Of a DNA stretch of 64,000 nucleotides, positions 1,018 through 56,055 are shown piece by piece; position 1 is the stretch's first letter; every line of letters begins with the position of its first letter. The notes under the pieces were generated by a model that did no database searches, had not been told where the DNA came from, and saw only the letters and a list, made by a program, of their open reading frames with translations. This stretch comes from Asterias rubens (Eukaryota), in contig NC_047072.1 in NCBI RefSeq assembly GCF_902459465.1, positions 3,410,001-3,474,000 on the forward strand. The letters run 5' to 3'. The translations under genes were made by a program, and so were the position numbers.

Positions 1018-1738
1018 GTTGTTGTTGTTTTTTGGTGTTTTTTTTTTTGGGGGGGGGGGCACTTGTTAAGCCACTGCAGACCCTACCCATTATCAGTAAA
1101 ATGAACGAGAGAATAAGTCAGCAGGAAAAACAATGTTTATTGGATGCATTATTTACAAATAAGGGTGCACTAGAGAAGTCCTAGTTTTGGCGAGAACTGT
1201 TTTTATGAAACCCAAAGTGTGGCGCTGATTAGATATACGTCAGTTCAGCCATAAGTAGGTGTAATTTTCCGATAAAGCAACTTTTGACCTCAACTATCAA
1301 ATAAAATTTACAGATTAAATAAAAACATGTTGTAGATATATGACAAGCCACTTGACCTCTTGCTTGAAGTACCACTCAGTGAGGGTCCATTTACTGTATA
1401 CATTTAGTTGGTAAGTGCAACTATAGCTTGGGAAAAAGACTTCGTTTTTGTCTAAGCCAAGCTGGTTTAAATGAATCCGAAAAAATGTTTTATTTAGATT
1501 TGAATGCACGGGGAAACTCTATATACATAAGTTTAGTGTGACAGTAGGATGTTTCACTTTGTCAACATTTAATGAATTGAAAAAAGGTATTTGTTTAGAG
1601 CACTGTTTTGATTATTATCTGTGAGAAATTTAGGGGGGTCTAGAACAGGTTTGTTTCAAATGGAAGTTTCGATCTGGTGGTCCCCATGAGAAACGTTTTG
1701 AATACTGAAGTTTGCGTTAAGTTGCCTTTGTTACTCAC

Positions 1739-2182
1739 CTCGCTTATGATAGTAGTCTTATACTGCGTAGTGTCAAACACCCAACCATTGGAGCAGTCTA
1801 TAATTTTGTTGGTATAGTCAGTTGCATTCATTCCATGTTTGAATTCTAGCTTCCGTACATCGTACATGTGACACCTATCGTAGTCTTTCTCCCCTGTCTC
1901 CTTGTTGGTCACAATGAGCGGGATAGACGCGTTCCTCTTTGCTTTAAGACACTCCCAGTCATCGAACTGACCGGTCGTGCAATTGGCCTTATCCCAGTGG
2001 GCCACCCGACACCAGTGGTCAGTATCTGCGGCCATAAAGACCTGTGCCAGGGTGTTCATTGCTGTCATTACGCCTATTAGAGACCCAAAGAAGAAAAGCA
2101 TCTTCTGCCATGTTCCAAACTCACCTATAGCCGAAAGGATATCATCGAATTTCTTTGGTGGCTTAACTTCGTTATCCGTCAT
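1739..2182 (-). CDS. SLC22/Orct-like organic cation transporter, copy 1, coding exon 1 (rest of gene lies off the left edge or was not detected)
   Basis: MTDNEVKPPKKFDDILSAIGEFGTWQK...QVFMAADTDHWC...FDTTQYKTTIISE has the SLC22 N-terminal FDDIL..GEFG.WQ motif, TM1 and Cys-rich loop; 444 bp ending at a GAG|GTGAGT donor. Confidence 0.9.
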
Positions 2183-7003: not shown

Positions 7004-7532
7004 CGGATTACTCCTAGAACTATTTCGGTTTCATCTGCTATCGTCTCTAGTAACGGGAGATGATAGCAGACGAAACCGCAATATGGGAGACGATTGCAGA
7101 CGAAACCGCAATATGGGAGACGATTGCAGACGAAACCGCAATAGTTCTAGGATATGGAACGCCAAAGAGGCATTTAATAATCGGTGATGGTCTTTCGGAA
7201 CCGGTGATCAAATTTGTCGTCGGTGGTGGTCCGAGATGGTCGTTGGGAGATGATCTGTTTATATATTATTTATTGGGGTGACCTTGCCCGAGGATGACAT
7301 TTTCGTGGGCAAGTAAGCTAGATTACCATCATCCGGATTACTCCTAGAACTATTTCGGTTTTATCTGCTATCGTCTCTAGTAACGGGAGATGATAGCAGA
7401 CGAAACCGCAATATGGGAGACGATTGCAGACGAAACCGCAATAGTTCTAGGATATGGAACGCCAAAGAGGCATTTAATAATCGGTGATGGTCTTTCGGAA
7501 CCGGTGATCAAATTTGTCGTCGGTGGTGGTCC
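7004..7532. repeat. Tandem duplication of a small MITE plus the left end of the foldback element
   Basis: 7004-7232 is repeated at 7334-7532; the first copy has one extra 30-bp GGAGACGATTGCAGACGAAACCGCAATATG unit. Confidence 0.85.
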
Positions 7533-10500
7533 TATGCGATCGGTGATCAACTTTAGCAATCGGTGATAAAACGATCGGTGGTCCATTTTAGCGATCGGTC
7601 ATGCATATTCATGATCGGTGATGGTATTAGCGATCGGTCATGCATATTCACGACCGGTGATGGCTTTTTGCAATCGGTGGTCAACTTTAGTGATCGGTGA
7701 TGGCTTTTTGCAATCGGTCAACTTTAGGGATCGGTGATGGCTTTTTGCAATCGGTCAACTTTAGGGATCGGTGATGGCTTTTTGCAATCGGTCAACTTTA
7801 GGGATTGGTGCTGGCTTTTTGCAATCGGTGAACTTTAGGGATCGGTGCTTGCTTTTTGCAATCGGTCAACTTTAGGGATCGGTGCTGGCTTTTTGCAATC
7901 GGTCAACTTTAGTGATCGGTGGTGGCTTTTTACAATCGGTCAACTTTTGCAACCGGTGATGAAATTTTGGATATTCGAATTTTGCGTCCGGTCGGTGCAG
8001 GCTTCTTCAAAATCAATGATTGTGTAGATTGTTGTTATTTTGTAGTTCACACCACCATGGATGAATAAATTACACTCACCAGCGGGTTGAGTGACTTGCC
8101 AAACATTTTTAGAAGAGTACCATTTTATAACTATAAGGGGGAACGCAACAAACATCAAATTAATTAGCTCTTTCTAAAGAAAACAATAATAATAACAAAG
8201 GGGTAGGAGAGGGTGTGCAAGCGGATATATGTTCCACAATTGGGTGTCGTCTTCCGGAAATGGTGTATGCCGGGGAAATACAAATATTTATATTCAGTGA
8301 AAGGAAATGTTTTTGAACAAGAGTCTTTACCGATAGTTTTGTGTGTAAGGGGAAATCTGAAATCATACAAGTAGCCCCGTGTAAACAGACCCGGAGGAGA
8401 GAACATTATGACCACACAAAAACCGTTTTTGATGGAAAAAAGCATAATGTTTATGTGCATCATATGAATGTTTTGGGGGACAACTTGAGTGACTGGTCTC
8501 ACTTCATTGATCATCTTCTAGAATTTGGAAATCTCCAGTTCAAATATTCATACAAAAACTAGTGATTTTCTTTTCCAAACTCAATCTGTAAATCTACCGT
8601 ATCTAAAGTTTCAACTTCTCCTCTGAACAAAGCTAACTTTTCCTTTGAACAAAGGGGCAAAATTTCATTCCCTGAACTATATGCACACAAAGACACACCA
8701 ACCAAGAAGTATGGCAAAACAAAAGCGAATATGTGAGAAATCTGAGTAGGGTCACTTGTCAAACAAAATGAGAGTATTTTGTCATAATTTCATAGAGCAA
8801 TCATGAAATTCAGAAAAGTTATCGGTACAGACTCGTATTAGTTGTTCAAAAAACGTTTTAAAATATTTGTATTCCCACACCATTTCTGGAAGACGGCAAC
8901 CAATTGGGACATGGATCCCCTTCCGCACCCTCTCCTACCCCGTTGTTATTTTACTTTTTAGAAAGAGCTAGCTAATTTGATGTTTGTTGCGTCCCCCTGA
9001 CATAGTTATACAATGGGACTCTTCTATGAATGTATGGCAAGTCAGTCAAACAGACTGGTGAGTGGCGTAATCTGCAAGCATAGGTTTTGAAATAGGCTTG
9101 CACCGGACGCAAAATATCATCACCGATTATTATTTGCCTCTTTGGCGTGGCGCCAACGCCAAAGAGGCAAATAATCATCGGTGATACTTGGCGTAAAATG
9201 TGTCACTGACCTCATTACTATAATAAGGGAAGAGTTCCCACGGTCAACTCATGATCATATTGCCCGCGAAAGACGAGACATGTTTACATCACACCACCAC
9301 CACGGACGCTCAGTGAGCATGATAGGGTCCAAAGGTTGTGATAAGAGAAGTGCGTGATTGGACGTCAAAATGAATTATTCATTTGCTTCACATCCTGTGT
9401 TGTCTGATAGGTCTGACGAAAGATATACATATTCATGAGCTGCACACTAGCATATCAGAGAGCCCCCCCCCATTTTGTTTCCAATGTTAGAATTTTTTTA
9501 TGAAACACATTAAACCCGGATGTTACAGACCCGACAAGGCTGTCGGCCAGACGGCCTCCGCATGCGGTTAGTGGTACGAGTGCGTAAAGGACCAACTAAT
9601 TCCAGCTAAATTGCAAGCTTCAACCGAAGAAAACACAATCAACAAAATGGAAGCACAGAACTTGCAAATCCTGCTTGACCTATCAACAGAAACTAGAGTT
9701 GGGTACACACAACTAAAACTAAACCAGTGCTTGGACCTAGATGAGACTACGAATACCAATAACAAACGAAAAATACCTGTCTTGCTGGATCCTCTTTGTC
9801 CAAATAAACCAGTCTCTCCTTGTTGCAAAACTTTCATTAGCAAAAAAAATGGTGACTGATGAAGTGCAGCTTATATAAAGCACTGAAAATTATGTTCTTG
9901 AGCCATCCATTAAAGGTATTTAATGGCTCGACATTATTATCGCCGGATAAAAGTTTTTTTTTAGTGATTTTTTCAACCTCTTCCAGACTCCAATTCTCCT
10001 ATTCCAGGCCCCCACTCTTTTTTCAGTGTAGATGCATTTAAAATCAAGGTCTGTTCTAATTTTCTAACCATTGCTTTGTCTATTTGGAAAACCACAAATC
10101 AATATACAGTCAGATACCACACCGATTATAACATGTGTTTTCCTTTTCAAAACCCCTCCACCCGCCTGACAACGGATTTGGTTTAGAATTTCTCGCTCCT
10201 GTATTATTTCCGCTTAAGTACTTTATAACACCTGTTCCGCTTGCGCCCCCCCCCCCCCCCCCTAAATTAAGAACTTTATACAGTACGTTTTTCGCTTTGG
10301 CTTAAATTAATACATGCCTCGATCTCCGTTTATTAAAAGGAAATATTTGTATAATACTTTACCTTGCCTTTTATGAAACGTGTTGAGTGCGTCCCGGTTT
10401 TACTATTATCTGTACGTGCTTGTTCTAAAAAAAAAAACAATTCATGATGCACATAATGTTTTTGCCATCAAAAACGGTTTTTGTGCGGTCATAATGTTCT

Positions 10501-13150: not shown

Positions 13151-13552
13151 TGTAACGAACTGAAACTGTGCGCCCCGCCGGTGCGTTGGAGTGGCCCCGC
13201 CGGATCTTGGAGGACAACGCTCCCACGGCAGCTGGCTTGAACTTTTGGTGAACTGTTCTGTGATTGGACGAACTATCGATGATGTATAACATTGTATAAC
13301 ATAATTATAAGAGATTATCCAGGTGCGCGGACCGGATGCGTTGTTTTGGCGCCTTTTCTATACAATGTATTGTGTATGATTAAGATGTGTGGACAGACCA
13401 AATGTTGAGTTCAGTGAGTGAGCATGGAATCAGTTGTTCTTCTCGAAGTATTAAATAAATCAGTGCGTTTCATATTGAACGGAATTTGAGTTCGTTTGTT
13501 TTCTGTCTGCGTTTGGCTACAGAGCAAACAAGGACCCTGGCAGTACGTTACA
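13151..13552 (+). mobile_element. Solo LTR (Gypsy-like)
   Basis: TGTAACG...CGTTACA termini, 4-bp TSD CTAT on both sides, internal AATAAA; 402 bp. Confidence 0.85.
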
Positions 13553-26706: not shown

Positions 26707-26789
26707 TGCAAAATGCCGACAACAATTGCACGACTTTACGTCCTTATGAATGACAACCTGCCCCAATATCTGTTTTCAATTACAAGATT

Positions 26790-29439: not shown

Positions 29440-29543
29440 CAGTCTGCGATTGATCCAAAAACAATGGAGCCAAAAAGAAGCCCACCAAAGTAGACAGATT
29501 GGAGGAAGCTTGCACCAGCCTGATTCGCACAAACCAGCTCGAA
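29440..29543 (-). CDS. SLC22/Orct-like copy 2, coding exon 2
   Basis: AG|FELVCANQAGASFLQSVYFGGLLFGSIVFGSIAD-TG|GTAAGT; 104 bp, the same length as exon 2 of the complete copy. Confidence 0.9.
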
Positions 29544-33086: not shown

Positions 33087-33134
33087 TTAATAAGAACAAC
33101 AATATTCAGGAAACACCCATCAAATTGCGTTTTC

Positions 33135-33516: not shown

Positions 33517-34290
33517 TTTAAAGATATTGTAAAGCACATGTGTGACACATGCAAGCTGCCATTTGTTACACTAAACCAATCAAATGACTTCATATGATTA
33601 AAGAATAACTGAAATTAAGTGGTTAAACTTCGGCTATTTGTTATTGTAACGGTAACCAAAGCTTGATTTTTTTATTCAGTTTGTCATAATTTGCTTGAGG
33701 ACGGATGCATGTCTCATGAAAAAATGGAGCTGCGTGATAAGTGCCGTTCCCCGTCCCCTGCCCCTTCCTCTCCCCGTCCCACGTGCTATAATACCTGCCC
33801 CTGTTTTGCTCATAGATCTGTCAATTCTCAACGGATTTTTGTTTAAAAATAGATGAGTGTCAAGACGAAGTCAGCGTCTTTCTTCCGTGTAAATTTGGTG
33901 AGGTTTGATGCGGTATCCAGGGAGGAGATCCAATAACATCCCCCCCCCCCCGACACACACATACAGAGAGACAGACACGATTCGGCTATTTATAAAGAGA
34001 TAGCACACAAAAAATAAGCACGTATATAAAAGAATATCAAATAAAACAACAAAACAAAAGTTGTTTTATTTAGATTTGAATGAGCAGGGGTAGGGCAATT
34101 CTAGATACATTGTGACATTAGGATGATTCACTTGGTCGAAATTGATTGATACCAGCAACGATTTGAACATTATCTGTGGGAAATTTAAGGGACCAGAACA
34201 GGTTTGTTTTAAATCGACGTTTCGATTTGGTGTCCCCATGAGAAACGTTTTGAATACTGAAGTTTGCGTTAAGTTGCCTTTGTTACTCAC

Positions 34291-34734
34291 CTCGCTTATG
34301 ATAGTAGTCTTATACTGCGTAGTGTCAAACACCCAACCATTGGAGCAGTCTATAATTTTGTTGGTATAGTCAGTTGCATTCATTCCAGGTTTGAATTCTA
34401 GCTTCCGTACATCGTACATGTGACACCTATCGTAGTCTTTCTCCCCCGTCTCCTTGTTGGTCACAATGAGCGGGATAGACGCGTTCCTCTTTGCTTTAAG
34501 ACACTCCCAGTCATCGAACTGACCGGTCGTGCAATTGGCCTTATCCCAGTGGGCCACCCGACACCAGTGGTCAGTATCTGCGGCCATAAAGACTTGTCCG
34601 AGGGCATTCATCGCTGTCATTACGCCGATCATTAAAGAAAAGAAAAATAACTTCTTCTGCCATGTTCCAAACTCGCCAATGGCGGTGAGGATGTCGTCAA
34701 ATTTCGTAGGTGAGACGATTCCCTTGGGTTTCAT
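34291..34734 (-). CDS. SLC22/Orct-like copy 2, coding exon 1
   Basis: MKPKGIVSPTKFDDILTAIGEFGTWQK...TTIISE|GTGAGT; 444 bp; splices in phase to 29543. Confidence 0.9.
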
Positions 34735-39592: not shown

Positions 39593-39728
39593 CTAGATCT
39601 TCTTGTCTATCTCCAATGTCGTTTCATACGCATGGTTATCCAATTCCTGCTGCATGTCAGCATCCTTCATGGTCATGGTTACCATGGCAATGTTGTCCTC
39701 GTTGTCTCCTCCTCCAAAACATCTTGGT
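39593..39728 (-). CDS. SLC22 copy 3 exon 10 (last)
   Basis: CAG|A-PRCFGGGDNEDN...LEIDKKI-TAG. Confidence 0.75.
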
Positions 39729-42700
39729 CTGGACAGAACAAAACAACATTATTTGAAATAATTGAAGACAAAGTAAGTCTTATCTTAATAAAAGCACTTC
39801 AATTTCAATCTAAAGTCTTTCTCGTTAAACTTGTATAATTTGTGGTTAGATGATCCCCTCACCTCTTTCGAGGTTGTATCCTAAACTTTTGTGTGACCTC
39901 TGACAGTATGCATAATCATTGAAAGGTTGAATGATTCTAACCCCTCGGCTTCACCTCGTTGAATTGGTTATCTTTGTTTGACAAGGGTAATGCCGATTAT
40001 TAGGTAGACCGTCCACATAGGGTCTGTGTCTGCCCGCAGCTCGCTGGAAAGCCGGCGTGTTGATCAGGAAGTCATTGGTTCCAATCCCGCTCTTAGTAAA
40101 TTAGTCTTTGTTCAATGCAACATTATTTAAAATGTAACCAGTCAGTTCCCTTAGTATTTTCTACTTGATCATTTGCACTTCCTATTAGTACCAATCCTTC
40201 AACTTAAAACGATTTCAAAAGTTGAGCAAATTGCAAATAGCAAACCAGTGTTGTTTATTTGGATAGCTACGGCTACAGGCATAAACTACCCCGGAATGGG
40301 GTAGTTCTATGATCTCCCTCGCTTTGTGGCCATTGGATCGTTTCTCGTAATTACACTAAAACAAACAGATCGACTTGTCGCAAACTTACAATGTCCTGTC
40401 TTTTCTTTAACGACATTTACGAGAAATGCTTTAGAGCAAACCCGGACGGGTTAAGGTGGTGCAACAAACGCCTTAACAAATGTTGGGAGAAAACGCGATG
40501 AGAAATCTTTTGCTGAAACAACCCAATACAAGCTGAGAAATCACAAACGTGTATTACAATAACAACACAAACATGAACAGGGTATCGATTAAGTTGTTCC
40601 CTCCCTCTAGCTTAAAAGTCTGTTTTAAATACATTTGATCTGAATAGTAAATAGATGCATCATGACATTGAGCAGAACTTCGCCTATCACATCCTTTAAA
40701 GATCAAGCATCGATCATTATTGCAAAGAGCATCGTGGGGCATTAAATGAAGACCCTATTACAACACATCATCTGAACTTACTTTCCGAATGCTTCCCCTT
40801 CTTCCAGAGTCTCAGGGAGTTTCTTGTGGTTAGTCTCTGGGAGAAGCAATGCAAGCAGACCCGCCAGAATGGACAAAGAACCAAACAAGATAAATGGCAG
40901 AGGTTCCCATACAGTCTTCAACTGTAGAATATAGGGAGAGAGGATACCCGCAACACGGGCAGCAGTGGATGACAAACCCATCCCGGCACTCCTGTATCAC
41001 AAAGGGGTTTAGGCAGTCATTCATTTATTGATTAATAATCAAAATATTATAAAACGTGAAACTCAAGATCATGTGTGTTAACATAATGAAACAATTATAA
41101 GTGCATGCCAAAGAAACAAGAAATATGCTTAAACAGAAAAAGAAGAATTCGGCCATAAAACATAAACCAGCCTTGCTTTGAATTAAGCGTTGGGACCTAG
41201 GCTCTAGAAATGAATTAATTTACCAACCTCTTTTAATCGACTAACTATTTTAATTGTGGACAAAGACAATTTTCAAATAAAAAAAGGTACCATTTCTTCA
41301 TAATCATAATGCAGTCTAAGAAACGATTGACTTTTTCAAGACATAATTTTATTCTTTCTTTTGGTACACACTTATTGCAGTACGTGCTATATTGTTTACT
41401 TGTCATTAATATTCTGTATGAGTTTAATATTATTTTATGTTTTACTTTTTTTTTATCTGGACGCATTGATTCGGTGCAAAACAAAGGTAAACAAATATCC
41501 TGGATAAAAACGGTTGGTTCCCTCAAAATAATAGCTCGTTTTCATTGCATAATAATCCTAGAATAAACGATTCTAATTCATAAGGCGAAGTTTGCCTTGG
41601 GACTTTACCGACCATCCTGACAAACGAGAGAGATTTACGTGAGATAGCGCTTAAAACCAGCCAGCAATCTAATCCTCATATTTTACAAGTCAAGTTTCCG
41701 TTAACCTAAGGGTCACTGGTTTCTAATGGTGGGCACGTAATCTCTTTCGTCATGATGGTCGGTAGCATCCCAATAAATTTTCGCCTAATAAATTCAATAA
41801 ACTTGTTTAATGTTAGGATCTAATGGGAGACTTTCTGGGACGATAGAGGGCAGCAGACTTACCGGGTAAATCCATTGTTCTCAGAATTATGCGCATGTTC
41901 AGAACTACGTAAACAATGGAAATTTACCCGGTATGTCTGCTGCCACCTAGCGTTGGAAAGTCTCCTATTGTTTACCACCATGACGTCACTACAGAGACCA
42001 CGTGAGATGTCTAGAGTAACGGAAACTTGACTTATCGAATTAGAGAACCACTAAAGAGTTGAAAAACATAATAATTATGTTAATAACATATGTAACACAG
42101 TTTCATCAACATGATTCAGACAACTTTATTGGATCAATTTGTGTTCAGATTTATTTGTGGTTAATTATATTAATTTTGGTTTTTACCCATACACCGATGT
42201 GTGTTAGCACTGTATACTCAGTACTTTCCCGAGTCCTGTGAAAAAATATCACAGGCATGTTACTCGGGTAACATGCCTGTGATATTTTTTTTATTTATTT
42301 TTTAACAGGACTCGGGAAAGTACTGAGTATACAGTGCTAACACACATCGGTGTATGGGTAAAAACCAAAATTAATATTCTTTATCCCCGATGGTTAATTA
42401 TAACTACACACAAAATTAAGAACCTTGTTTTATTACAATACGTTTCTTAAAGGGACACACCGGCTCACCGTTTACGCAATTTAGGGGTGTATAATCATAA
42501 ATAATGTTTTTATAGATGGTTGCTGTAAAATAAATCATCATAATGTCACGAATTTAGCGAAAAATGATTTTAAAAACCCAAAGCGGTAAAAGGCCAGCGT
42601 ATACGTGTTTCCAGCCGTTGCAACTGTCAGATTTTATATTATGGGAATAAAAGGGCAGTGACGAGTTAAAGCCGGCAGTGTCGTGGCCGTGTGATAAAGG

Positions 42701-45700
42701 CCCGAGCCGAGGTTAAAAGGCGTATATAGAAACTCGGTGAAAACTTATCCGTTTTCTGACGTCCCTGGCATGTTCATTTTTAAGAGATCAGTCAACCGGG
42801 GGATCGAGGTTGTTGGCTAACCCACACAAATGGTAACCGAAAGCCATCGTAGTAGAAGCGGCGTCTATTAATCAACTACGATTACCGACGATTACACCTG
42901 GACCAATGGCCGACCAGCGGGTTTCTACTTCGAAGTGGTTGCCGACAGTGCTGCGTTTTTATTGATCACAGAGATATATCTTACCACGATGTCACCACAA
43001 CGCTGCTTTTACGAATGGCGTTCACACTACGTGATTTTGCCCCGCTTATTGTAGGCTACGACCCGGCTATACGATTATTTTAAACATGTTCAAAATAAAC
43101 GTGGGGAGACAATGCGGCTTCCCGACATAGGAGATCCCACCCCGACAAAACCACGCCCATGGAGATCCTCCCACGTCTGGCCCATGATAGGCCCGCGATT
43201 GACCACGCTCTCGGCCACTTTTCCATCGTAGCAGAAGCGGTGTCTATGTATGACAGGTGTATAAACGACGGAGCAGGACAGATACACCCCCTCCGCAGCT
43301 GGTTGCATCGCACAATGACGGCTGCTGGCTGGTAATCGCTATCAAACGTGGAATCTGGGGGTGACGTCAGGATGTGAGGTAGAATTCGGGGTATAGAAAT
43401 AATTGTTTCTTGGAACACTGTTTCAAAAGAACGAAACGCCAATGTTTGTAACTGCTTTACCTGTTGATACGTGATTCTTTTACCTGTACCTTTAGGGGCT
43501 CGATCATCTTCCAATATTCCATCTAACTTCACTTTCCAGCTTTACATACCTTACAGGTGTAGGGAATATCTCTCCTGACACGACGTAGATAGTCGCAAAC
43601 GATGCTGTAATGCAAAACTTCCCAATCATGGCAATAACTGTCCTCACAATGCCCATTTCTGCATTTTAATCAAAGTAAATAAATCCAATACAGTTAGAAG
43701 CAACAAACAGCTGTTAATGAACAAAATACAAAAAAGTTACACGACTCTCAACCGTCACGGTCGTAGTTGTCTACGTGGTTGTTGTCTTTGTCGTCGTGGT
43801 AATCGTTGTCATAGTGGTTATGGTCATGTTCGTGGTCGAGGTTTTTTTCCTCATCACCATTGTCTTCGTGGTCATCGTGGTCGTCCTCAGCGTTGTTGTG
43901 TTGGTGTCGTTGTCGCTGTCCTTGTCGTTGAAGATTTTGTCACAGGATGGTTACTTGATGATATACAGGATAAGATTGACCATAGACAGTTTGGCAATGT
44001 TAAAGGTGTTTCCACCTCACACTACCTAACCCATTTAATGCATTATCTCTTTCAGGGAGCTGAGGAAAGTGGTAACCTGGGAACGGTGGTTCTTACCGAT
44101 TTCTCCAAGGCTTTTGACCTTATCGACCATACCCTCCTTATTGAAAAGATCATTGGCCTTGGAGTTCGTGGATCCATCGTTCCCTGGATTTGCGACTTTC
44201 TCCATCTCAGACAACAATGTGTTAAGTACAACAATATTCTTTCTGACTATGTGTTTTTAAAGGGTGGTGTGCCTCAAGGTACAACATTGGGTCCAGTTGG
44301 GTTTCAGATTGTAATTAACGATGCTGTTCAGGGCTCAAAATCTCAGTACTGGAAATACGTTGATGACCTGACATTTGCTGAGAATCGTAATATTTCTGAC
44401 CTGGCCATCTTCAGAATGACCTGTATTGCTTTCAAAAATGGTCTGATGAAAAATTACTCAGGCATAATCCCAGCAAGTGTCGGGCCCTCCAAGTAAGTTT
44501 CAGTAAAGCTCCTCCCCCAAAAACTTATCTTAAAATCGGTTCTGAATCTATTCAGACACTGAGGAGGCTAAAGTTCTTGGCATTGTACTTCAAAGCAATC
44601 TTAAATGGGATGCCCAAGTTAATGACATGATACGCAACAAAGCGAACAGACGTTTGTTTATGCTTAGAACATTGAAACGTTTTGGTTTTGACTGCAACGA
44701 ATTCAAAATAGTTTATGAAGGGTATGTGCGATCTACACTTGAATACGCTGATGTAGTTTGGCATTCTGGTTTGACAAAAAAACAAAGTGACGACATTGAA
44801 CAAATTCAAAAAAGAGCCTGTAGAACCATGGAGGAAGGAAGAGAAGGAGCTCGAACGAAGGGACTTCAAAAGTCGAACCTGCGGTACCGCGGTCGTTTAA
44901 CAACACCTTGTAATCACCCACATACCTTTATACAGACAATGGGCGACCTGGCATAATGTGAGTTTGCGCGTGTGCACTTGGTTCTTCACTCAACTATGGT
45001 GTCGTATGTCGTATGGATATAATACAGAAAAACAACTTTTTTGAGACCTGATAAAAATTGTGTACACTTGTGCCCACCAAATCGAAAAACACAATTGAAT
45101 ACCTACCACCCTCGTGTGGTAAAACCCAAATTTTGAACCACCGCTTGTGACCGGAAAGTCACAAAAAATGTAAAAATGTGCCATGATGTTTCCGTGAAAC
45201 ACTACAAACGGTAAATGAAAACATGTATATTCACAATTCTTGTCTCCAATGATTCAACTTTACAAGCAGGCAAGAGCGCAGACTGGCGATACCACACGTT
45301 CTGTACAAAGAGATCAAATCCTGCTTGTTAATCGGCCGTCCAGCTGGAGGTCTCCTATCTTTTTCCACTGGCCAGACAGGGGCATTGTCAGAGTATTCTT
45401 TTGTTACTCTGCGGTTTTGCGGGTCGTTCGAGCTCCTTCTTTTCCTTCCTCCATGGTAGACCCATCTTAGGTCATTCATATCTGTCTTATACTGATGCCT
45501 TAGAATTGTGTAATCTTGTCTCTTTATCTAACCGAAGGGTGGACCACTGCCGTGGATTTGCGGAGGGTTTGCCTAAATCAGACCGAACCAGTGGTCTCCT
45601 TCCTCCATCCAGGTTGGAAAGTCATGGCAGATGCCTCCGAAGTGCCACCAACATATCCCAGCTCCGTGTCAAAACCAATCGTTTTCAAAATAGCCCAATT

Positions 45701-48700
45701 GCTGATTTCATTAATTTGATTAACACCCAATGATTATGTTTTTTCTCTTTCTCTGGTTGCATTTTGAATTGTTGTTAGTCTTATTGATTGTTTTCCTCAG
45801 CCAGTCCTATTTCCGTGTGTTTTTGATAGCGTGTTTTTATCCTGCCTTCTATTTGTTTTACGTATTTTTTGTGCTTTTTTGTATTATTGCAGTTCATCAT
45901 TGTTTGTATTCAACCAGTCCTGTTCTTGTAATAATAATTATATCAATAATAATAATATGTGTTTTTTAATATCTTTTTATATTTATAATATTAATTATAT
46001 CAATAATAATAATGTTTTTACTTTTTAATTATTGTAAATCATGTGCAATTTGGCCTGTGGGCCACGAAATGTGATTCCAATAAAATGAAATGAAATGAAA
46101 AAAAATGAAAACTAATAATTGTTTTCTTCTTATGTGCCAATGGAAACTAAATTTCTGTTTATTTATGATGCAGACAATAAAACATTCTAATTGTAATTGT
46201 TATTTTGGTTTCGAAATAGTATTTTTTTACCTAGGAAAGCAGTAATGACGCAAGCAATGCCTCCAATCAACATACTGCCGCTCAGGTTATATCTACGGCC
46301 GTACTGCAAGGCGAAGAGGCAGAAGATGAGAGACGGGAATTCCACTAAACCTGAGATTGCTGCTGCCACGTAGTCATCAACCCCGAGATCTGAGGTGCTC
46401 AAACCCAATCCATAGTACACCATGCTGTTCACTGCCCTGTTGTATAGGAGCGAATGTATACAGGGTCAAACTGACGAGAAACGTTTGTAAACGATGTCTG
46501 TTCAAAATCACAAGTGAAAGAAAGATTTCTTTGTGAAACACACAAGGTTTTATACGCATTTGTTGGCATCTTCTGATCTTACTAGAAGCTATACTTACCA
46601 GTTAAACATCATATTCAACGTCTTAATGCACATGTTTGGAGAAGCAAACAGACCAAATGCAGTTTGCTTGGCTGCCGAGTGCGTTTCAGCCTGGTAAAAA
46701 TGAGACAGTTTGTACACTTCGATTAAGTTAAGACGGAAGCAAAATACACAATAAGTAAAGGCATATAGGATTTGAGGCATTGCATGGTGAGGTATCAAAG
46801 TATATTTGGTTTGCGGTAACACTATGTGTGTATCTAAATTGTTCTTAGGGAACTGTCTTGCTTTATTCTACTGCCGCGGAGTAGATAATCGGAGGTTTGG
46901 GAGACTTATCAGTTCTGAAAAGAACTGTCCTGTGCCCAATTTCATAGAGCTGCTTAACGGTAAGCAAATTTTTTCGCTTAACGTAGCAAAAATAATTGCT
47001 TAAAACCATTCGGATTCCATGCTAAACGTACACGAGCTTAAGCACGTAAACAATCTCCGCGCGGAGATTTTAGATCGTTTGCTTAAGCAAAACAGAAGAA
47101 GGCAGTGTATTTTGCACTGTGTGCATGGCCTAGGGCTGCTTAACGGTAAGCAAATATGTTGGCTTAACGTAGCAACAAAAATTGCTCAACCGTAAACCTA
47201 TTTCACCAGCGGTTGCTAGCTTAAGCACGTAAACAAACTGCGCGCGCAACATTTTAGATCGTTTGCTTAAGCGAAAAAGAAGAAAAAATGGCGAAAATGA
47301 CAAAATGGCGGGCGAAATAAATGCGGAGTGCACTCGAGTGGCGATAAAAAAAATTCATCACCTTCTGTGTCTGATATGTATTATTTGTAATGGTTCAAAG
47401 TACCCCTCGAAAGGTTTACACGCTTACTTGAAAGTAAACAAGAAGATAATACATTGTACAGCATGATTCTGAAGATTTTAGACACTCGTTTATTCGCTAC
47501 ACCTACCATACAAACGCACGTACAATCACCGCTGTGCCGGCACAATAACATCGTTTGCAATGAGTGTTGTACTATGCGCTGTGTGAATAGGGTGCTTAAG
47601 CAAAATAGAGGCTTTAAGGACCCTTTTTGTTTGCTTACCTATGTAAGCAAAAAACCTTGCTTAAGCAAGGGTATGAAATGAAAAATTTGCTAGTTGCGCC
47701 CGTTAAGCACAAAATCGACCGTTACGGGATGCAGCTCTTTGAAACTGGGCCCGGCGCTTAAACAGGGTGCTTAAGCAAAGGGGCTTTAAGGACCCTTTTT
47801 GCTTGCTTGCCTCGCCGTTTTAAGCAAAAAACCTTGCTTAAGCAAGGCTATGAAATGAAAAACTTGCTAGGTGCACCCGTTAAGCACAAAATCGACCGTT
47901 AAGCAGCTCTATGAAATTGGGCCCTGATTTTAACTATTGCGCCTTGTCTCTCAAGTGCTATGATTCGAGCCTGATCCCAATCTATGACATGGTCTAAATC
48001 GGTGGAGTGTTTGACAATGGTTGATTTGTCATATTCCCCTCTGCGGCCGTGTGCTTTATGTTCTTTTAGCCTGGTAGTTAGGTCTCTACCGGTCTTGCCA
48101 ATGTACACTTTACCACAAGTACAAGGAATTCGATAGACCCCTGCCTGACTGCTAGAGTCATGCTTGTCTTTATGAGTGTGTAGATTCGTTTCCAACTTGT
48201 TGCGAGTTCGGTAGTAGACCTTGATTTCTGCCTCAAGGAGGATCCGTTGAATTTTGTGTGAGGTATGGAAGGACCGCAATGGGCATGATTGTGCAGACTG
48301 AGAGTTGTGTTTTGAAAGGGACTCTCGTTTGTTTGGTCTTTACCCATTCTCTTTTAGCACTGTGTTAAGGTGCTCCAGTTCAGTAGGTAAATGTTCCTTG
48401 TCACAAATAATGTGTGCCCTTTGAAGTAGGGTTCGGTTCACTGAGGCTTTCACAGAAGGAAGATGGAATGACCGAGCGTTGAGGTAGCGGTCTGTATGGG
48501 TGGGTTTTCTGTACACGGAGTGTGCTAGAGAACGATCAGTCCTCTTGGAAATGAGTACATCAAGGAAAGGTAATGAATCGGATGTCTCAGTTTCCATGGT
48601 GAACTGAATGTTCGGATGCTGGCGGTTAATATGACTAAGGAAGTCATCAAGGTTTTCCAATCCATGTGACCAAATGATGAACGTGTCATCCACATATCGG

Positions 48701-51700
48701 AGCCAAAGCTTGGGTTTGAGTCGAGCGGTATACCCAGGGCTTTCTGTTCAAAATCTTCCACGAAAATGTTCGCTAACCTGAGGAAATAGGAGACCCCATG
48801 GGAGTTCCCTTTTGTTGGTTTTTTCTTGCATGCAGTTTAATAAGTGGGTTTGTTCCTTTACATGCAGTTATGAGGGTTAGTTCTTATAACTGCAGTTATA
48901 CTGGTTGGTTCTCACATGGAATTTGTGTTGTTGGTTCTAACCTGCAGTTTTGTAGTTTGTCATTTCCTACAGATTTGGTGGTTAGTTATTATTACCTACG
49001 GTTTTAATGTTTGTTAGTTCTTTCTTCCAGTTTTGTTGGTTGGTTGTAACATGCAGTTTCATTGGTTCATTCTTACCTGTGCAGCTCTGATATTTGCATT
49101 GGTAAACACATCTTCTGGAAAATCCCTTTTATTCGATTTTGCCAGTTTTCTGAGCGTAGTTTCAGCTTGTCGATACCGTCCTTTAGATATCTGCCAACGA
49201 GCTGATTCCGGGAAGTAACTATTTGAGAAAGATTTAAAGAACGATGAATCAATGCAGGGACAGCACGGAGGTATAGGTGGGTATTTTTAATTAGTCAACA
49301 GAAAGTGATTAAGCTCTTTCTTAATGAAGGCTGCCACCAGACGATCTTTCACGGATGTATTCAAATACAAATATAGTGTGTTGTTAATGCTGTTTCGGTT
49401 GAAGTTTAGAAAACGTGACAGGTACAATATAAGTGGTACAATGTTGCTTTCTTGGTGGTTATAATGATCACTGACTGTCCTCGAGCCTCTTAGAGGGTAG
49501 TACAAGGCCTGGGTTATACTCACAAGTATAGAAGCAGATACAGAATTGTTGGAACAGCTATCAGAAGCTGCAAAGGTCTCCAAGTCGGAACAAAGTAGGC
49601 AATCAACGGAAGGATTGACAAACCAATGGAGGGAAATATCTGAACAGAGATACCGACCAAGACACGTTTGTTCGGACCAATGAATTCACATGCTGTGGGT
49701 GGAAAGGGTGTCAAGCATAATTTATACATGTATCACAAATTGTTATGAAGAAAAGAGACGGAAGCCGACCAAGGGCCAGGTGAAATATTTTGTACATGAG
49801 CGCGAATATTTTTTTCGTACCATTTATCTGGCGGCCACCACTTATTATCTAGAGCATGAAGCAGGATCAAAGTGAAGCAAGTCAATGTATTACAAAGAGA
49901 GCACGCACTTAAAATCCGCTAAATAAAGAAAGTGAGTTTCCTTCCTCCATTGTGGTACAGACAATTATATTGCGGATATTCATGGAACATTACAGAATTC
50001 TAAGAAAAAAAATCGTTTGTCAGTTTGTGTATATGGTGGACTACAAAGTGTTTACACTGCTAGCAACTGTTTCGTTAGAAAACAGAACATTCTGTAATGT
50101 TCCTTTAAAGTCACCTTGAAGTGGTATTTTGGCAAAATTTGTGTTTTGATGAGTGGAATGTAACAAAAAACGTACAAACTCATGACTTGGACTTGCATGT
50201 ATATTTGCACGTGTGTTTACTCTACGTATCAAGGCAAAGTCTGCCTCGATTGACGTCACAAAAGGGGTAGGCGGAGTCAACCCCCAAACAACTTTAACTG
50301 TTTTTTAAACGTATAAATCGTGACAAACAATTACTTTAAAAAAATATGTTGTTGTTACTAAACATTATACTCTTATGTTTGCAAAAATAAAAATTATATT
50401 TCCAGGTGACTTTAAGTGGCAGCCGCCAAATATATGGTACAAAAACATTCTGGCGCTCATAGACAAATTATCTTTACCAATTAATAAATGAATTCATTAA
50501 TACATGGTTAAATATATGAACATGCTCCTTGCAATACTGTAATTGTGTAACACCGTTTAAAAACAAATTGCATATTTTTCAGCTTAACAGCTTTATGAAG
50601 ATTAGCAAAGAAAAAGAACTGATCTTCAGTGCCGACAGCCGACAAACTGGTTTCTGTTTACACTTTTGCACTTGCCAAGGCACTGACCTGTCAACTTCCT
50701 TTTTCTGTTTTTCTGTTCATTTTTGGGTTGCAAGGGGGTTAATTTTATAGGCTAATGTTTAACGTAACCATGACATGTGCTGCAGAGTATAAACCATAAA
50801 TATCGGATTGACTGATACAAATTATAAAGGCCCTGTCACACCATGGCGTATCGCCTGAACGTATGCCAACGTATGCACAAAATAGTTCGAAAATTGTCAA
50901 AGTCCAAGACCGTCCAACTTCCAAACGAATTGCATCGAAAAAGTCGACATCGGTGTTGGAAAGGCTGTATACATAGCGTATTGATAGCGTTTTACTAACT
51001 AATAACAAAGTTATGACAGCGTATCACAGCATATGCAAGCATATGAGTAACGTAACGTATGCCTAAAGCCAAAGCAGTGAGATATAAACGAAATATTGTT
51101 CGTGGATTTTTAAAGTGGTAATACCTTACAGTAGAAATAGTCACCGACGTATATCAACGTATACCAACCTACGAGTAACGTTCCTCTAACGTATGCCAGC
51201 GTATGTCAACGTATGTCAACGTATGTCTAACGTACCATGAACTTACGGGGAACTTATGCAGAACGTATGAAGCACACGTTCAGTTCGCCGAGAAATTTTG
51301 AACATGCTCAAAATAATTCGCAGGCTCGACGTGTTCAAAATTTTAACAGCGTATCACAGCGTGCTCTTAACGTAAACGACATATCCCCAACTTACCCCAA
51401 ACTTATATCAGCGTACACCAACGTATTTTCAATATTTCGCATACGTTGGCTTACGTTTAGCCGATACGCCATGGTGTGACAGGGCCTTAACTCTTGCGTT
51501 GAGGGAAACGAACAAGGGACGGTAGTATTGTGGGTATTTGCTTTCCTAAATCCAGCGCGTTATAATAGTGAACGTACCTAGGACGTATGCCACAAGATAC
51601 GATCCAATCCCGCCAGCAGCTACAAAGAATCTCAGCAGCATGTAAGCAAAGAAATTGGGTGAAAACGTGTTGCCAATAGACGCTAACATGAACAAAATAG

Positions 51701-54700
51701 TTGATATGAAGACGGTAGGTTTACGTCCAAGCCTGTTATGGAGAAACAAAAACAAAACAAAAGCAATATTCAATATTCAGAACTATTTATCGGATTCTGA
51801 AAATCGATTAATTTTGCACCAGTCATTAATCGTCGTTTAGTCAGTTATTTATTTTATGCACATGTTATTGGAATAGATTTACTCTTTTGTTGGTCAAAAT
51901 AATGGTGCTCTTTTGTGGGTCAAATTATTTTTTTTTCTCGCTTGTTGGTCAATATATTTGTGTTCATTTCTTTGTCAAAATATTTGTGCTCATCTGTTGT
52001 TCAAATTATCGTTGCTCTTTAATTATCGTTTTTTTTTTTTTTTAATCAGTGTAGGCTCAGATATTGACTGTCCAAACTGCCCAGTTTTACACAGATAGGG
52101 CCACCCACATTAGTGGTATGTAGCCTATATCAACCACCAGTTTATGGTCATATAAAATAACCACTGCTTGTTTCAAATATAGCTGTTACCCATGTAGGTC
52201 CGAGAATTCAAGGCATGGGTAGAGTTAATCATTTGGATTCTGTTTTTCGGTTTACTTTTATATGGACTAAACCAATAATAGGTTAAGCTTGCTCTAAAAG
52301 GGGTTTAACAAGCTTCAGTGTTGGTTGAACACGTTTAAACCAATGGGGTAGATCAGGAGACCATTAATTGGTCTAAATGTACAATGTGTTAACAAACGGG
52401 TTCAAAATCCACCCAATATTGGTCGAGCTTATCCCCAAAACAAAGGTTAACAACCAATCTCAATGTTGGGCAATGGAGAACAAGATACCATCTGTTGAAC
52501 TTAAGGTAAAAAACAAGTATATTTTACCACGTATTGGTTAAGAGTTTTTTAAATGACCAATTTACTAGGGAAGTTTTGCTAGTTACAATATAGATTAACA
52601 AACAACTGGTACTTCGAAACTGACCACTCAACTCAACATATATTTCTCACATCGACCAGAGTGTGCATGTTTATTATTTTCTGATTAAGTAAAAGGGCCT
52701 CACTAAAATATTGTTTTTAAGTGTTAATTTCTTTTTTCTTTTTTTATTGAATTGTTGCCTTTTTTTTACTTGAAAAAAACCCATTATCTTTTATATAGGG
52801 TGCGTTCGTTTAGCTCCCCTGGGTCGACCACGCGGTGCTCACTCGGGTGAGCCCCTGACAAGAGCTAATCGAACGATCACACTCGCCCTCTCGTGGTAAT
52901 AGGGACTTTTCGTTTTCGGCGACGGATGGTTCTGCGACGGTTGTTCAGCTAAACGTTGTCGTTTTCAGCACAACGAAGATTCATCCCAAGTACTGTCGTA
53001 GAAATTGAGGGACGACCGTCCTCAAAGCCGACGCATGCGCACATGACGCCAAATGTCATCTTCACCGTCGCAGAACCATCCGTCGTTGAAAACGAAAAGT
53101 CCCTACTGGCATGCACCTCAGGGAACCCCAAGTGACCCACTCCACAAGCAGGGCACTGGGGCTGACCCGGGTGAGCCCCGCCAAAGCTGTTCGAACGTAC
53201 CGGGGCAGACCAGGGTCGACCCAGTGAAGCTTAACGAACGCACCCATAGATACTAATGTTACTGTGTTTGAACTTTGACCGTTTCTGCTCGCTGACTTAC
53301 CAATCCGCAACTGAGCCAAAGAAAAAAGAGCCGAAGAGAAGACCAGCGAAGTAGACGGATTGCAGGAAGCTGGATGCAGTCTGAGCGTCACATACAAGCT
53401 CGAACTATCGATAAAAAAATTGTGAAAATGCTTTTAAAACAATTCATTGGTTGAAATATGCTTTGGTTATGCTTATGGTCCCATTAATGTTAAGGACAGG
53501 AGAGACTGTAGTGTTATATACCGTATTGAATGTGACGTCACACGGCTTAAATATCTGACCTACAAGATGGCGACTTTTCATTGCAAAAAGGGGTTATTCA
53601 ATACGGTCTATAGTCAGCCTCGTTACCATGGGCAGCGCGCCGTATCGATACAAGGCATGCTGGGAAAAATGGCGCGGTGAGATCGATCACCCCTGAGAAC
53701 GAGGTTGGTCTATAGTGGCCTCATCATTGCACCCTAGGTTCTTATTGGGTGCGTTCGTTCAGCTTCCCTGGGTCATCCCCGGTCTGCCCCGGTGCGTTCG
53801 AATAGCTTTTGAGGTCATTCCAGGGGCTCACCCAGGTTAGCCCCCCCCCCCCCCCCCGCTCTGCTGGTGGAGTGGGTCACTGCACTTGGGGGCTTGCCCC
53901 AGGTAAACGACGTCACTACGAGAGCGGTGAGTGGTCGTTCGTTTAGCTCTTGTCAGGGGCTTACCCGAGTGAGCACCGCGGGGTAGACACAGGGAAGCTA
54001 AACAAACGCACCCATTGAGTCATCAATCAGGCCTCATCAGTGCCCCATGGGTCCTTTTGAGTCATCAATCAGTCATAATCAATGCACACTGGGTCCTTAA
54101 TGAGTGATCAATCAGGCCTCATCAGTGCACACTGGGTCCTTATTGAGTCATCAGTCAGGCCTCAGCAGTGCTTCCTGGGTCCTTATTGGGTCATCAGTCA
54201 GGCCTCATCCGTGCTTCCTGGGTCCTTATTATTGGGTCATCAATCAGACCTCATCAATGCACCCTGGGTCCTTATTGAGTCATCAATCAGGCCTCATCAG
54301 TGCATCCTGGGTCCTTATTGAATCATCAATCAGGCCTCATCAGTGCACCCTGTGTCCTTATTGAGCCATCAATCAGTCCTATGCAATGCACCTTGGGTCC
54401 TTAATGAGGCCTCATCAGTGCATCCTGGGTCCTTATTGAGTCATCAATCAGACCTCATCATTGCGCCCTGGGTCCTTATTTAGTCATCAATCAGACCACC
54501 TCATCAGTGCTTCCTGGGTCCTTATTGGGTCATCAATCAGGCCTCATCAATGCACCCTGGGTCCTTATTGAGTCATCAATCAGACCTCATCATTGTGCCC
54601 TGGGTCCGGCCCTATTGAGTCATCAATCAGGCATCATCATTGCGCCCTGGGTCCTTATTGAGTCATCAATCAGGCATCATCATTGTGCCCTGGGTCCTTA

Positions 54701-56055
54701 TTGGGTCATCAATCAGGCATCATCATCGCGCCCTGGGTCCTTAATTAGGCCTCATCAGTGCATCCTGGGTCCTTATTGAGTCATCAATCAGACCTCTTCA
54801 TTGCGCCCTGGGTCCTTATTGAGTCATCAATCAGACCACCTCATCAGTGCTTCCTGGGTCCTTATTGGGTCATCAATCAGGCCTCATCAGTGCACCCTGG
54901 GTCCTTATTGAGTCATCAATCAGGCATCATCATTGTGCCCTGGGTCCTTATTGGGTCATCAATCAGGCATCATCATTGTGCCCTGGGTCCTTTTTGAGCC
55001 ATCAATCAGACCTCATCATTGCGCCCTTGGTCCTTATTGAGTCATCAATCAGACCTCATCTGGGTCCTTTTGAGTCATCAATCAGACCTCATCATTGTGC
55101 CCTGGGTCCTTATTGAGTCATCAATCAGACCTCATCATTGCGCCCTTGGTCCTTATTGAGTCATCAATCAGACCTCATCATTGTTCCCTGGGTCCTTTTG
55201 AGTCATCAATCAGACCTCATCATTGTGCCCTGGGTCCTTATTGAGTCATCAATCAGACCTCATCATTGCGCCATTGGTCCTTATTGAGTCATCAGACAGA
55301 CCTCATCATTATTCCCTGGGTCCTTTTGAGTCATCAATCTGACCTCATCATTGCGCCCTGGGTCCTTATCGAGTTATCAATCAGGCCTCATCATTATGCC
55401 ATAGGTCCCCCATATTGAGCTATCAAGCAGACCTTATTATTGCCCTCATGATCCTTAGGAGTCCGGTCTGGACAGCAGTGGGTCTGTCAGAAGAACTGTC
55501 AGAATAACTAAATTTGTATGATCAATACTTACATCAAATTGTTGTCAACAATTTAAACAAAGGTATATTTTGTTGATAAATCAAATGACTCACCTCGCTT
55601 ATGATAGTAGTCTTATACTGCGTAGTGTCAAACACCCAACCATTGGAGCAGTCTATAATTTTGTTGGTATAGTCAGTTGCATTCATTCCAGGTTTGAATT
55701 CTAGCTTCCGTACATCGTACATGTGACACCTATCGTAGTCTTTCTCCCCCGTCTCCTTGTTGGTCACAATGAGCGGGATAGACGCGTTCCTCTTTGCTTT
55801 AAGACACTCCCAGTCATCGAACTGACCGGTCGTGCAATTGGCCTTATCCCAGTGGGCCACCCGACACCAGTGGTCAGTATCTGCGGCCATAAAGACTTGT
55901 CCGAGAGTATTCATGGCTGTCATGATGCCGATCAGCGAAACCAAAAAACACAAAATTTTCTGCCATTTTCCAAACTCGCCAACAGTGAACAGTATGTCAT
56001 CAAACTTGAGGGCTGATGACTTTTGAGCATTGGTGTCCGTCTGCTCCTTCGACAT
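39593..56055 (-). CDS. SLC22/Orct-like organic cation transporter, copy 3, complete gene, 10 coding exons, 594 aa
   Basis: Exons 56055-55594, 53404-53301, 51732-51578, 49692-49524, 49218-49077, 46690-46599, 46436-46231, 43658-43550, 40991-40782, 39728-39593 total 1785 nt, all GT-AG and phase-compatible; MFS/SLC22 motifs D.LGRK, EFIGP..R, PESARW, EIFPTPVR, LLPET. Confidence 0.93.
40782..40991 (-). CDS. SLC22 copy 3 exon 9
   Basis: SAGMGLSSTAARVAGILSPY...LLPETNHKKLPETLEEGEAFG. Confidence 0.9.
41822..41969. mobile_element. Palindromic MITE
   Basis: AATGGGAGACTTTC...GGCAGCAGACTTACCGGGTAAAT inverted against ATTTACCCGGTATGTCTGCTGCC...GAAAGTCTCCTATT. Confidence 0.65.
42167..42377. repeat. ~100-bp-arm near-perfect hairpin derived from an inverted SINE-like segment
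   Basis: ATATTAATTTTGGTTTTTACCCATACACCG...CATGTTAC-TCGG-GTAACATG...CGGTGTATGGGTAAAAACCAAAATTAATAT. Confidence 0.85.
42451..42520. mobile_element. Isolated Kolobok terminus related to the 9-kb element
   Basis: TTAA|AGGGACACACCGGCTCACCGTTTACGC has the same 14-bp TIR and a subterminal sequence resembling the right end of 14736-23776. Confidence 0.7.
43550..43658 (-). CDS. SLC22 copy 3 exon 8
   Basis: MGIVRTVIAMIGKFCITASFATIYVVSGEIFPTPVR; 109 bp. Confidence 0.9.
43930..46110 (+). mobile_element. 5'-truncated CR1/L2-group non-LTR retrotransposon (RT fragment), antisense in intron 7
   Basis: VLTDFSKAFDLIDH, GVPQGTTLGP, KYVDDLT, LEYADVVWHSGLT..IEQIQKRACR; frameshifted; 3' AATAAAATGAAATGAAATGAAA tail. 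Confidence 0.85.
44825..45457. mobile_element. 633-bp MITE inserted in the LINE
   Basis: TIR ACCATGGAGGAAGGAA.AGAAGGAGCTCGAACGA; TSD AGA (or TAGA); removing it restores ACR-PILGHSY. Confidence 0.8.
46231..46436 (-). CDS. SLC22 copy 3 exon 7
   Basis: AVNSMVYYGLGL...VEFPS...YGRR...GGIACVITAFL. Confidence 0.9.
46599..46690 (-). CDS. SLC22 copy 3 exon 6
   Basis: AETHSAAKQTAFGLFASPNMCIKTLNMMFNW. Confidence 0.85.
46932..47924. mobile_element. Harbinger-like MITE with TTAAGC repeats and an internal duplication
   Basis: GCCCAATTTCATAGAGCTGCTTAAC ... GTTAAGCAGCTCTATGAAATTGGGC. Confidence 0.75.
47930..48800 (-). mobile_element. Penelope-like retroelement fragment (RT C-terminus + GIY-YIG endonuclease)
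   Basis: LWLRYVDDTF..W.HG, LPFLDVLI, VYRKPTHTDRYL; GVYRIPCTCGKVYIGKTGRDLTTRLKEH; frameshifted and partly deleted. Confidence 0.9.
49077..49218 (-). CDS. SLC22 copy 3 exon 5
   Basis: YFPESARWQISKGRYRQAETTLRKLAKSN. Confidence 0.9.
49524..49692 (-). CDS. SLC22 copy 3 exon 4
   Basis: CEFIGPNKRVLVG...YFVPTWRPLQL; 169 bp. Confidence 0.9.
49795..50461. mobile_element. Degenerate mini IS3EU-like element with a nested TTAA MITE
   Basis: Imperfect ~50-bp inverted ends (ATGAGCGC..GTACCAT.TAT.TGGCGGC..CCACTT) containing a unit like the 21-bp array; nested TTAA|AGTCACCT...AGGTGACT|TTAA at 50109-50411. Confidence 0.55.
50828..51487. mobile_element. Harbinger-type MITE
   Basis: AGGCCCTGTCACACCATGGCGTATCG TIRs with TAA TSD on both sides. 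Confidence 0.85.
51578..51732 (-). CDS. SLC22 copy 3 exon 3
   Basis: LGRKPTVF...LRFFVAAGGIGSYLVAYVL; 155 bp. Confidence 0.9.
52798..53245. mobile_element. GGGTGCGTTCG-family MITE with nested AGGGACTTTTCG MITE (52901-53104)
   Basis: TIR GGGTGCGTTCGTT, TSD ATA; internal second TIR pair. Confidence 0.8.
53301..53404 (-). CDS. SLC22 copy 3 exon 2
   Basis: FELVCDAQTASSFLQSVYFAGLLFGSFFFGSVADW; 104 bp. Confidence 0.9.
53747..54013. mobile_element. GGGTGCGTTCG-family MITE
   Basis: TIRs and 3-bp TSD ATT; inserted in the first unit of the adjacent minisatellite; partial copy near 59043-59110. Confidence 0.8.
54014..55440. repeat. ~37-bp minisatellite in intron 1 of SLC22 copy 3
   Basis: Unit CTGGGTCCTTATTGAGTCATCAATCAGGCCTCATCAGTGC-like repeated ~35-40 times without spacers. 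Confidence 0.95.
55594..56055 (-). CDS. SLC22 copy 3 exon 1
   Basis: MSKEQ...KFDDILFTVGEFGKWQ...TTIISE|GTGAGT. Confidence 0.92.

Follow-up and report, generated by a model that had tools for sequence, protein, structure and literature searches.

Evidence for repeated gene conversion of only the loop-coding segment of exon 1 in an SLC22 cluster of the starfish Asterias rubens

How can neighbouring transporter genes be almost letter-perfect copies of one another over some 300 bases of a single exon and carry saturated synonymous divergence immediately beside them? The question is raised by a 64,000-bp stretch of the Asterias rubens genome (contig C12:3410001-3474000; hereafter the window, whose own positions serve as coordinates unless another sequence is named), which holds three first exons of the SLC22 transporter family within 54 kb. 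All SLC22 features of the window lie on the minus strand. An initial annotation of this DNA had proposed that ectopic gene conversion limited to an extracellular loop repeatedly homogenised three SLC22 paralogs. Our analysis supports the core of that proposal. With a probability that we put at about 0.85, interlocus (non-allelic) gene conversion repeatedly copied the loop-coding part of exon 1 among the three first exons. The limitation of the conversion to that part is well supported, namely by the contrast in synonymous divergence, by permutation and by conflict between trees, and its repetition is supported by nested tracts, by borders that differ between pairs of copies and by recurrence in other clusters.

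The first exons of copy 1 (1739..2182, 148 codons), copy 2 (34291..34734, 148 codons, followed by a phase-0 GT donor) and copy 3 (55594..56055, 154 codons, delimited by the open reading frame and its start codon) each encode the N-terminus, the first transmembrane helix (TM1) and the large extracellular loop that leads from TM1 to TM2. The translations give a loop of roughly 100 residues with five cysteines and the sequons NCT, NAS and NAT. Direct reading and alignment show that 34291-34593 of copy 2 and 55594-55896 of copy 3, 303 bp each, are the same without a single difference. The equivalent block of copy 1, 1739-2041, departs from both at two positions, 1836, where copy 1 has a His codon and the others a Pro codon, and 1895, where a Thr codon carries a synonymous change. 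The initial annotation had counted the same differences. Within the 418-Mb genome the block is present in three copies only.

The sequence surrounding the block tells a different story. Synonymous and non-synonymous divergence (dS and dN) were computed by the method of Nei and Gojobori, with 47 aligned codons of the N-terminus and TM1 as the upstream segment. The block has a dS of 0-0.017; over the 47 codons that adjoin it on the upstream side the value runs from 1.0 to saturated, and about 30% of the bases of the three copies differ immediately 5' of the block. A profile of dS along the exon, a check put forward in the initial annotation, is thus far from uniform (0-0.017 vs at least 1.0). 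Divergence is high on the other side too: 27-31 of the 102 bases of exon 2 differ across the copies, with dS saturated and dN at 0.11-0.15. For copies 2 and 3 the count is 27/102, and the proteins agree at 26 of 35 residues; the earlier reading of a diverged N-terminus, TM1 and exon 2 therefore holds. In a Sawyer-type permutation of variable sites, none of 200,000 shuffles matched the observed length of the identical run, and this was so for every pair. Between copies 1 and 3, the segments compared are 60%, 100%, 80%, 58%, 69% and 79% identical. Because the surrounding coding sequence shows the copies to be very old, the near-identity of the block has to stem from recent copying.

Phylogenetic analysis leads to the same conclusion. 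In a tree of the TM2-TM12 region, copies 1 and 3 are separated by about 0.5 substitutions per site, a depth that equals that of their divergence from Patiria genes, and their order relative to Patiria and Acanthaster genes is not resolved; the depth of this separation indicates an ancient duplication. A tree of the loop conflicts with it and places all Asterias copies, copies 1, 2 and 3 among them, at zero distance. The GC content of the block (47-48%, against 43-45% upstream) was also considered as a sign of biased conversion, but so slight a gap makes no case for it.

The borders of the shared sequence indicate more than one event. At its 5' end the block stops at the TM1/loop junction, between Q and VFMAAD. 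The identical run of copies 2 and 3 covers 318 bp (34285-34602 = 55588-55905), so that the converted tract of copy 3, 55588..55905, holds the loop block and little more. In copies 1 and 2 the identity continues through the first 59 bp of intron 1 (1680-1738 = 34232-34290), as first noticed in the initial annotation, and the converted tract of copy 1 accordingly spans 1680..2041, made up of the 303-bp block with its two private substitutions and these 59 bp. Copy 2 carries both tracts, which together cover 34232..34602: 34285-34602 matches copy 3, and 34232-34593 matches copy 1 bar two bases. Beyond the 59 bp, copies 1 and 2 are still about 88-90% identical for roughly 70-130 bp of intron 1 (34162..34231 in copy 2), an older homology that is absent from copy 3, and blastn aligns 1607-2160 of copy 1 with 34162-34712 of copy 2 at 92%. 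The intron of copy 3 is unrelated to the other two from 6 bp past the donor, which agrees with the earlier statements that copy 3 diverges right after the donor and that the tract borders differ. More than one conversion event is indicated because the borders differ by pair and because the older tract of about 88-90% adjoins the newest one. The 3' border lies at or just past the exon 1 donor because the introns are no longer homologous, save in copies 1 and 2, which still share theirs.

Comparison with Asterias amurensis places these events in time. Both complete genes have full-length orthologs in this species, P0158 (locus L010) for copy 3 and XP_071801379.1 (P0266, locus L013) for copy 1. 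Its copy-1 block equals that of A. rubens copies 2 and 3 base for base, and its copy-3 block has two differing bases, which change Arg to Ser and Ala to Pro. Paralogous blocks thus differ at 0-2 bases and orthologous blocks at 2, and from this equality we place the last homogenisation at about, or before, the split of A. rubens and A. amurensis. Among other asteriids, protein searches with exon 1 gave three fragments only, and L011 and L012 are single short contigs; the block is about 90% identical in the L011 contig and much less alike in Acanthaster. As a separate observation, the Ala to Pro change turns the sequon N-A-T of A. amurensis copy 3 exon 1 (L010:10001-10462) into N-P-T, which predicts the loss of one N-glycosylation site of the loop.

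The two species also differ in the layout of the locus. Copies 3 and 1 are about 447 kb apart in A. amurensis (CP134965.1, 6,518,060 vs 6,070,883) and 37 kb apart in A. rubens. Synteny downstream of A. amurensis copy 3 stops at window position 34911, 177 bp before the ATG of copy 2. The break lies in satellite repeats (L010:33214-38628) whose array exceeds 5 kb and fills the rest of the fetched A. amurensis locus; it is related to the window repeat 57872-58666 and inverted relative to it.

Is the pattern peculiar to this locus? A scan of the A. rubens genome found 14 SLC22 first exons. Two of them (L021 and L023), arranged head to head at C3:20824425-20824853 on the plus strand and C3:20819203-20819622 on the minus strand, differ at 45 of 114 bases in the N-terminus and TM1, where dS is saturated, and at only 13 of 303 bases in the loop (95.7% identity, dS 0.21, dN 0.004). 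Their introns cannot be aligned, and the border falls at the homologous position, between Q and VFLAAK. The tandem Acanthaster planci genes P0151 and P0152 have a dS of 1.58 in the N-terminus and TM1 vs 0.30 in the loop. Their loops are 91% identical to each other, each is 73-74% identical to that of the Patiria protein which the TM2-TM12 tree places nearest to these two genes, the border between AQ and VFMAG matches the TM1/loop border, and the intron is again unalignable. A three-copy cluster of A. rubens (L027-L029, C12:1363944-1393154) is homogenised over the whole of exon 1, TM1 included, at 97-100% identity, and its flanks cannot be aligned. Homogenisation is therefore limited to the loop in three of the four cases and to exon 1 in all of them. 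The comparison with related species proposed in the initial annotation thus recovered the pattern in Acanthaster, in P0151 and P0152, and not in the Patiria cluster.

A simple mechanism would account for these borders. Exon 1 appears to be the sole long uninterrupted homology between the paralogs, so that heteroduplex would form there and stop at the diverged intron. The loop, as a self-contained extracellular domain on the longest exon, would be both mechanically open to conversion and functionally tolerant of it. Tracts reaching into TM1 would be blocked by mismatch and divergence or purged by selection, the latter presumably because TM1 must fit the helix bundle and pocket of its own paralog.

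The next question concerns the nature of the three copies. The initial annotation spoke of three SLC22 paralogs; copies 1 and 3 are indeed full genes, and copy 2 comprises exons 1 and 2 only. Exon 2 of copy 2, which encodes TM2 (29440..29543), has an intact AG acceptor and GT donor and an open frame, and is the last exon that can be recognised: four full-length SLC22 proteins searched against 2300-29400 at E up to 100 returned noise only, and exons 3-10 were not found there. The 27-kb interval from this exon down to copy 1 holds repeats. The N-terminus of copy 2 keeps the motif FDDIL...GEFG, its non-converted parts have dN/dS below about 0.1 against a saturated dS, and its eight private amino-acid changes are no excess next to the four of copy 1 and the ten of copy 3. 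To judge by these substitutions, the exons of copy 2 look intact and historically under purifying selection. Intact, constrained exons that lack exons 3-10 leave two candidates: a 5' module that the copy-1 gene uses as an alternative, or a gene that was truncated recently. Copy 2 acts at least as a conversion partner, and it may also provide the copy-1 gene with a second 5' end.

We regard the first of these candidates as tentative, at somewhat less than even odds. Copy 2 would have its own promoter and its exons 1-2, and the donor at 29440 would be spliced to exon 3 of copy 1 (at about -2467 in window coordinates), across some 32 kb in the downstream direction. With the same reservation, two genes would then make up the locus, one of which would have two interchangeable cassettes of N-terminus, TM1 and TM2 and one shared loop. 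The missing exons 3-10 all the way down to copy 1, the open frame, intact splice sites, low dN/dS and ordinary number of private changes are consistent with this arrangement, as are its location on the strand of copy 1, upstream of that gene, and a donor of compatible phase. On the other side, neither Asterias species has an annotated isoform with the copy-2 start; copy 2 was not seen in the fetched A. amurensis flanks, including the 10 kb upstream of copy 1; and a recently truncated gene would leave the same relic. Nor did two RNA runs, X22 and X23, which probably derive from the sister species and whose reads were placed at a likeness of at least 97%, give a read on the N-terminus specific to copy 2 or on its exon 2, a weak negative that is not evidence of silence. 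No reads of X22 fell on any of these SLC22 exons. X23 covers the block alone, at about 10x and mostly with copy-3-type reads, which carry both letters of the A. amurensis copy-3 ortholog and the copy-3-type bases at 34603, 34605 and 34612; its depth is about 0 on 34619-34815 and on exon 2 of copy 2. Copy 2 is part of no annotated protein that we found, and the current gene models of A. rubens lack the 5' half of copy 1.

Does selection, over and above available homology, keep the loops alike? Co-expressed paralogs might gain from identical loops that serve a shared extracellular partner or hetero-oligomers, while their transmembrane regions diversify, and selection would then fix the converted haplotypes; we consider this explanation, whose hetero-oligomer version had been suggested in the initial annotation, rather unlikely. 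It would fit the finding of the TM1/loop 5' border in three independent cases, the dN/dS of about 0.02 in the loop of the head-to-head A. rubens pair since its last conversion, and the loops of Patiria paralogs, only 58-64% identical, which indicate that loops usually diverge like the rest of the protein. The large loop is also required for oligomerisation in rat Oct1/Oat1 and in OCT2 (PMC11119549). However, three of the four post-conversion changes in the window cluster are non-synonymous, with no sign of strong protection of the loop, the RNA reads of X23 on the block are mostly of one type, that of copy 3, and the L027-L029 cluster converts TM1 as well. A neutral model, limited by homology, accounts for the same data equally well. 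That selection repeatedly keeps the loop alike among sea star SLC22 neighbours and, in addition, that copy 2 is a second cassette of the copy-1 gene is a compound proposal that we hold to be improbable. If it were true, these animals would have a family of carriers with different substrate pockets behind one outer face, for the sake of a shared partner, hetero-oligomerisation or quality control, and thereby an equivalent, among transporters, of paired receptors.

A technical origin of the identity is unlikely, and the particular form in which short-read polishing overwrote true paralog differences in a multi-copy segment is very improbable. The block does exceed the length of a short read. Contigs were assembled from a DNA run of the source sample (X1) and one of an independent sample (X2); in both, a single 362-bp contig spans 34232-34593, and contigs of this kind are unable to phase the block. 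Its depth is 491 in X1, against 158-180 in the flanks, and 70.7 in X2, against 24.5-25.8, which at about 2.8 times the flanks corresponds to about three block copies. The contigs of both runs also reproduce the unique flanks of copy 2 without differences, and each of the three loci has unique flanks of its own. The A. amurensis assembly, which was made independently, shows the near-identity of copies 1 and 3 (2/303) and itself contains a block identical to that of A. rubens copies 2 and 3. The two differences of copy 1 outlived polishing, and polishing cannot be the cause of the lower-identity cases elsewhere (95.7% and 91%), one of them in an Acanthaster assembly. On the strength of the A. 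amurensis assembly, the depth, the unique flanks and the lower-identity parallels, we reject an artefact. The last explanation, that no copying took place and that extreme constraint at the DNA or RNA level, such as an overlapping element, froze the block, has in its favour the very high conservation, synonymous sites included, and is close to negligible, being contradicted by the differences between species (the copy-3 ortholog of A. amurensis has two non-synonymous changes, and identity is about 90% in L011 and much less in Acanthaster), by the two private changes of A. rubens copy 1, by the continuation of the copy 1/copy 2 identity into the intron and by neighbouring codons saturated at synonymous sites.

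Several points nonetheless weigh against loop-limited, repeated gene conversion as we have stated it. The L027-L029 cluster was homogenised through TM1 and not in the loop alone, and neither the A. rubens pair L024/L026 nor the Patiria cluster has the loop-limited pattern. Conversion may have stopped, as the distances between paralogous blocks equal those between orthologous ones, and conversion later than the species split is at most a possibility; the Arg/Ser site cannot be polarised to prove it, as outgroups carry both states. Logan contigs pop bubbles and cannot phase the block, so that the base-perfect identity of copies 2 and 3 is not provable from them, and the two real differences of copy 1 are not among the contig rows shown for X1 and X2. 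Finally, the reason given for the position of the TM1/loop border is one that we infer.

The structure of the genes themselves is as follows. Copy 3 is a full SLC22 gene of ten exons that runs from 56055 to 39596 and encodes 594 amino acids; its protein, XP_033635587.1 (P0265), maps to the window at 100%. Exons 2-10 (39596..53404, minus strand) were located by tblastn with P0265 and P0158. Exon 2 occupies 53404-53301, with splice sites read in the sequence, and tblastn places the later exons near 51731-51579, 49693-49526, 49217-49077, 46693-46232, 43659-43549, 41005-40781 and 39730-39596. Copy 1 is likewise a complete gene, whose exons 2-10 lie to the left of the window (window coordinates -319 to -30290), and its A. 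amurensis ortholog is a full 582-residue model. The A. rubens model of this gene at NCBI (XP_033635412.1 / XP_033635413.1, P0174, 358 aa) comprises exons 4-10 only. The modelled part extends from -14932 to -30290 (loci L004, L007 and L008), and exons 1-3 are intact in the A. rubens genome despite the short model. Intron 3 of the copy-1 gene measures 12.3 kb in A. rubens and 3.1 kb in A. amurensis, with a surplus of about 7.4 kb in A. rubens between about -5500 and -12900.

Family membership was judged from P0265 and P0266. Their best NCBIfam match by far is TIGR00898 (2A0119; TC 2.A.1.19), with E about 1e-128 over profile positions 1-506 of 506 and a score of 429-431 bits, which is under the curated cut-off of 550.75. 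The MFS domains PF00083 Sugar_tr (113-122 bits; cut-off 22.3) and PF07690 MFS_1 are matched as well. The nearest solved structures are all SLC22 proteins (OCTN2, OCT3, OCT2, OCT1, OAT1 and URAT1; E = 1e-86 to 1e-55 over residues 17-550), the best of them OCTN2 (9pdq, E = 4e-86) and OCT3 (7zh0, E = 6e-85). The SLC22 genes of the window cluster in a clade of their own with other echinoderm genes named 'organic cation transporter protein-like'.

Repeats are frequent in and around these genes. In intron 1 of copy 3, a 1.4-kb minisatellite (54014-55463; period about 43 bp, copies 80-88% alike) begins about 130 bp downstream of the converted exon; A. amurensis has it as well (L010:10596-11313 and 12685-13268). 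An inverted repeat pair (38414-38939 and 59879-60397, 92.6% identical) flanks the entire copy-3 gene; further copies or fragments of it lie at 59314-60671, and a transposable-element family is its probable nature. Within intron 1 of copy 2 there is a very high-copy repeat (32650-33630), a transposable element or other dispersed repeat with a contig depth of 10^5-10^6 that is abundant in both RNA runs. The exon-free interval between copy 2 exon 2 and copy 1 contains a large inverted repeat of roughly 37-bp tandem units (7453-8450 vs 10451-11389) and, separate from it, a tandem array with a 21-bp period (26783-27513).

Within one exon, dS thus goes from saturation to zero, and the change falls precisely on the edge of a domain, which makes the locus a very clean natural experiment. 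The same border is found again in independent clusters, and two orders of starfish share it. Two ideas become testable: that the SLC22 loop is a freely exchangeable module, and that paralogs are under pressure to have it in common. What the loop contributes to oligomerisation, trafficking or partner binding continues to be a matter of debate in the OCT and OAT proteins, which are of medical importance. On the practical side, trees of echinoderm SLC22 genes that are built on the loop will mislead.

How does this case compare with known systems? A full-text literature search turned up no article that deals with gene conversion in SLC22; what we describe is a known process in a new instance, the SLC22 genes of echinoderms. 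Like vertebrate OCT1-3, OCTN2, OAT1 and URAT1, the starfish proteins are homologous from end to end and have a TM1-TM2 loop with cysteines and N-x-S/T sequons, and exon 1 encodes the N-terminus, TM1 and loop in both. Unlike their vertebrate relatives, they sit in an echinoderm clade. Exon-limited concerted evolution is familiar from tandem duplicates such as the globins, RHD/RHCE and the red and green opsins, in which short non-reciprocal tracts are bounded by diverged introns or selected sites and leave a mosaic of near-zero and saturated synonymous divergence. The starfish genes share with them the short, bounded tracts and the mosaic of dS along one gene, and differ in family (SLC22) and in host (echinoderms).

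A second parallel is found in paired receptors. Conversion keeps the extracellular domains of neighbouring receptors alike in Siglec-11/16 (PMC5701461) and in the activating and inhibitory pairs of CEACAM (PMC2832619). Those proteins are single-pass immune receptors in which the shared domain binds ligand and the divergent part signals; the starfish proteins are 12-helix MFS transporters, and their shared part is an internal loop. What unites them with Siglec-11/16, Siglec-5/14 and the CEACAM pairs is that only the extracellular-coding part is homogenised, that the rest has diverged and that this has happened in several lineages.

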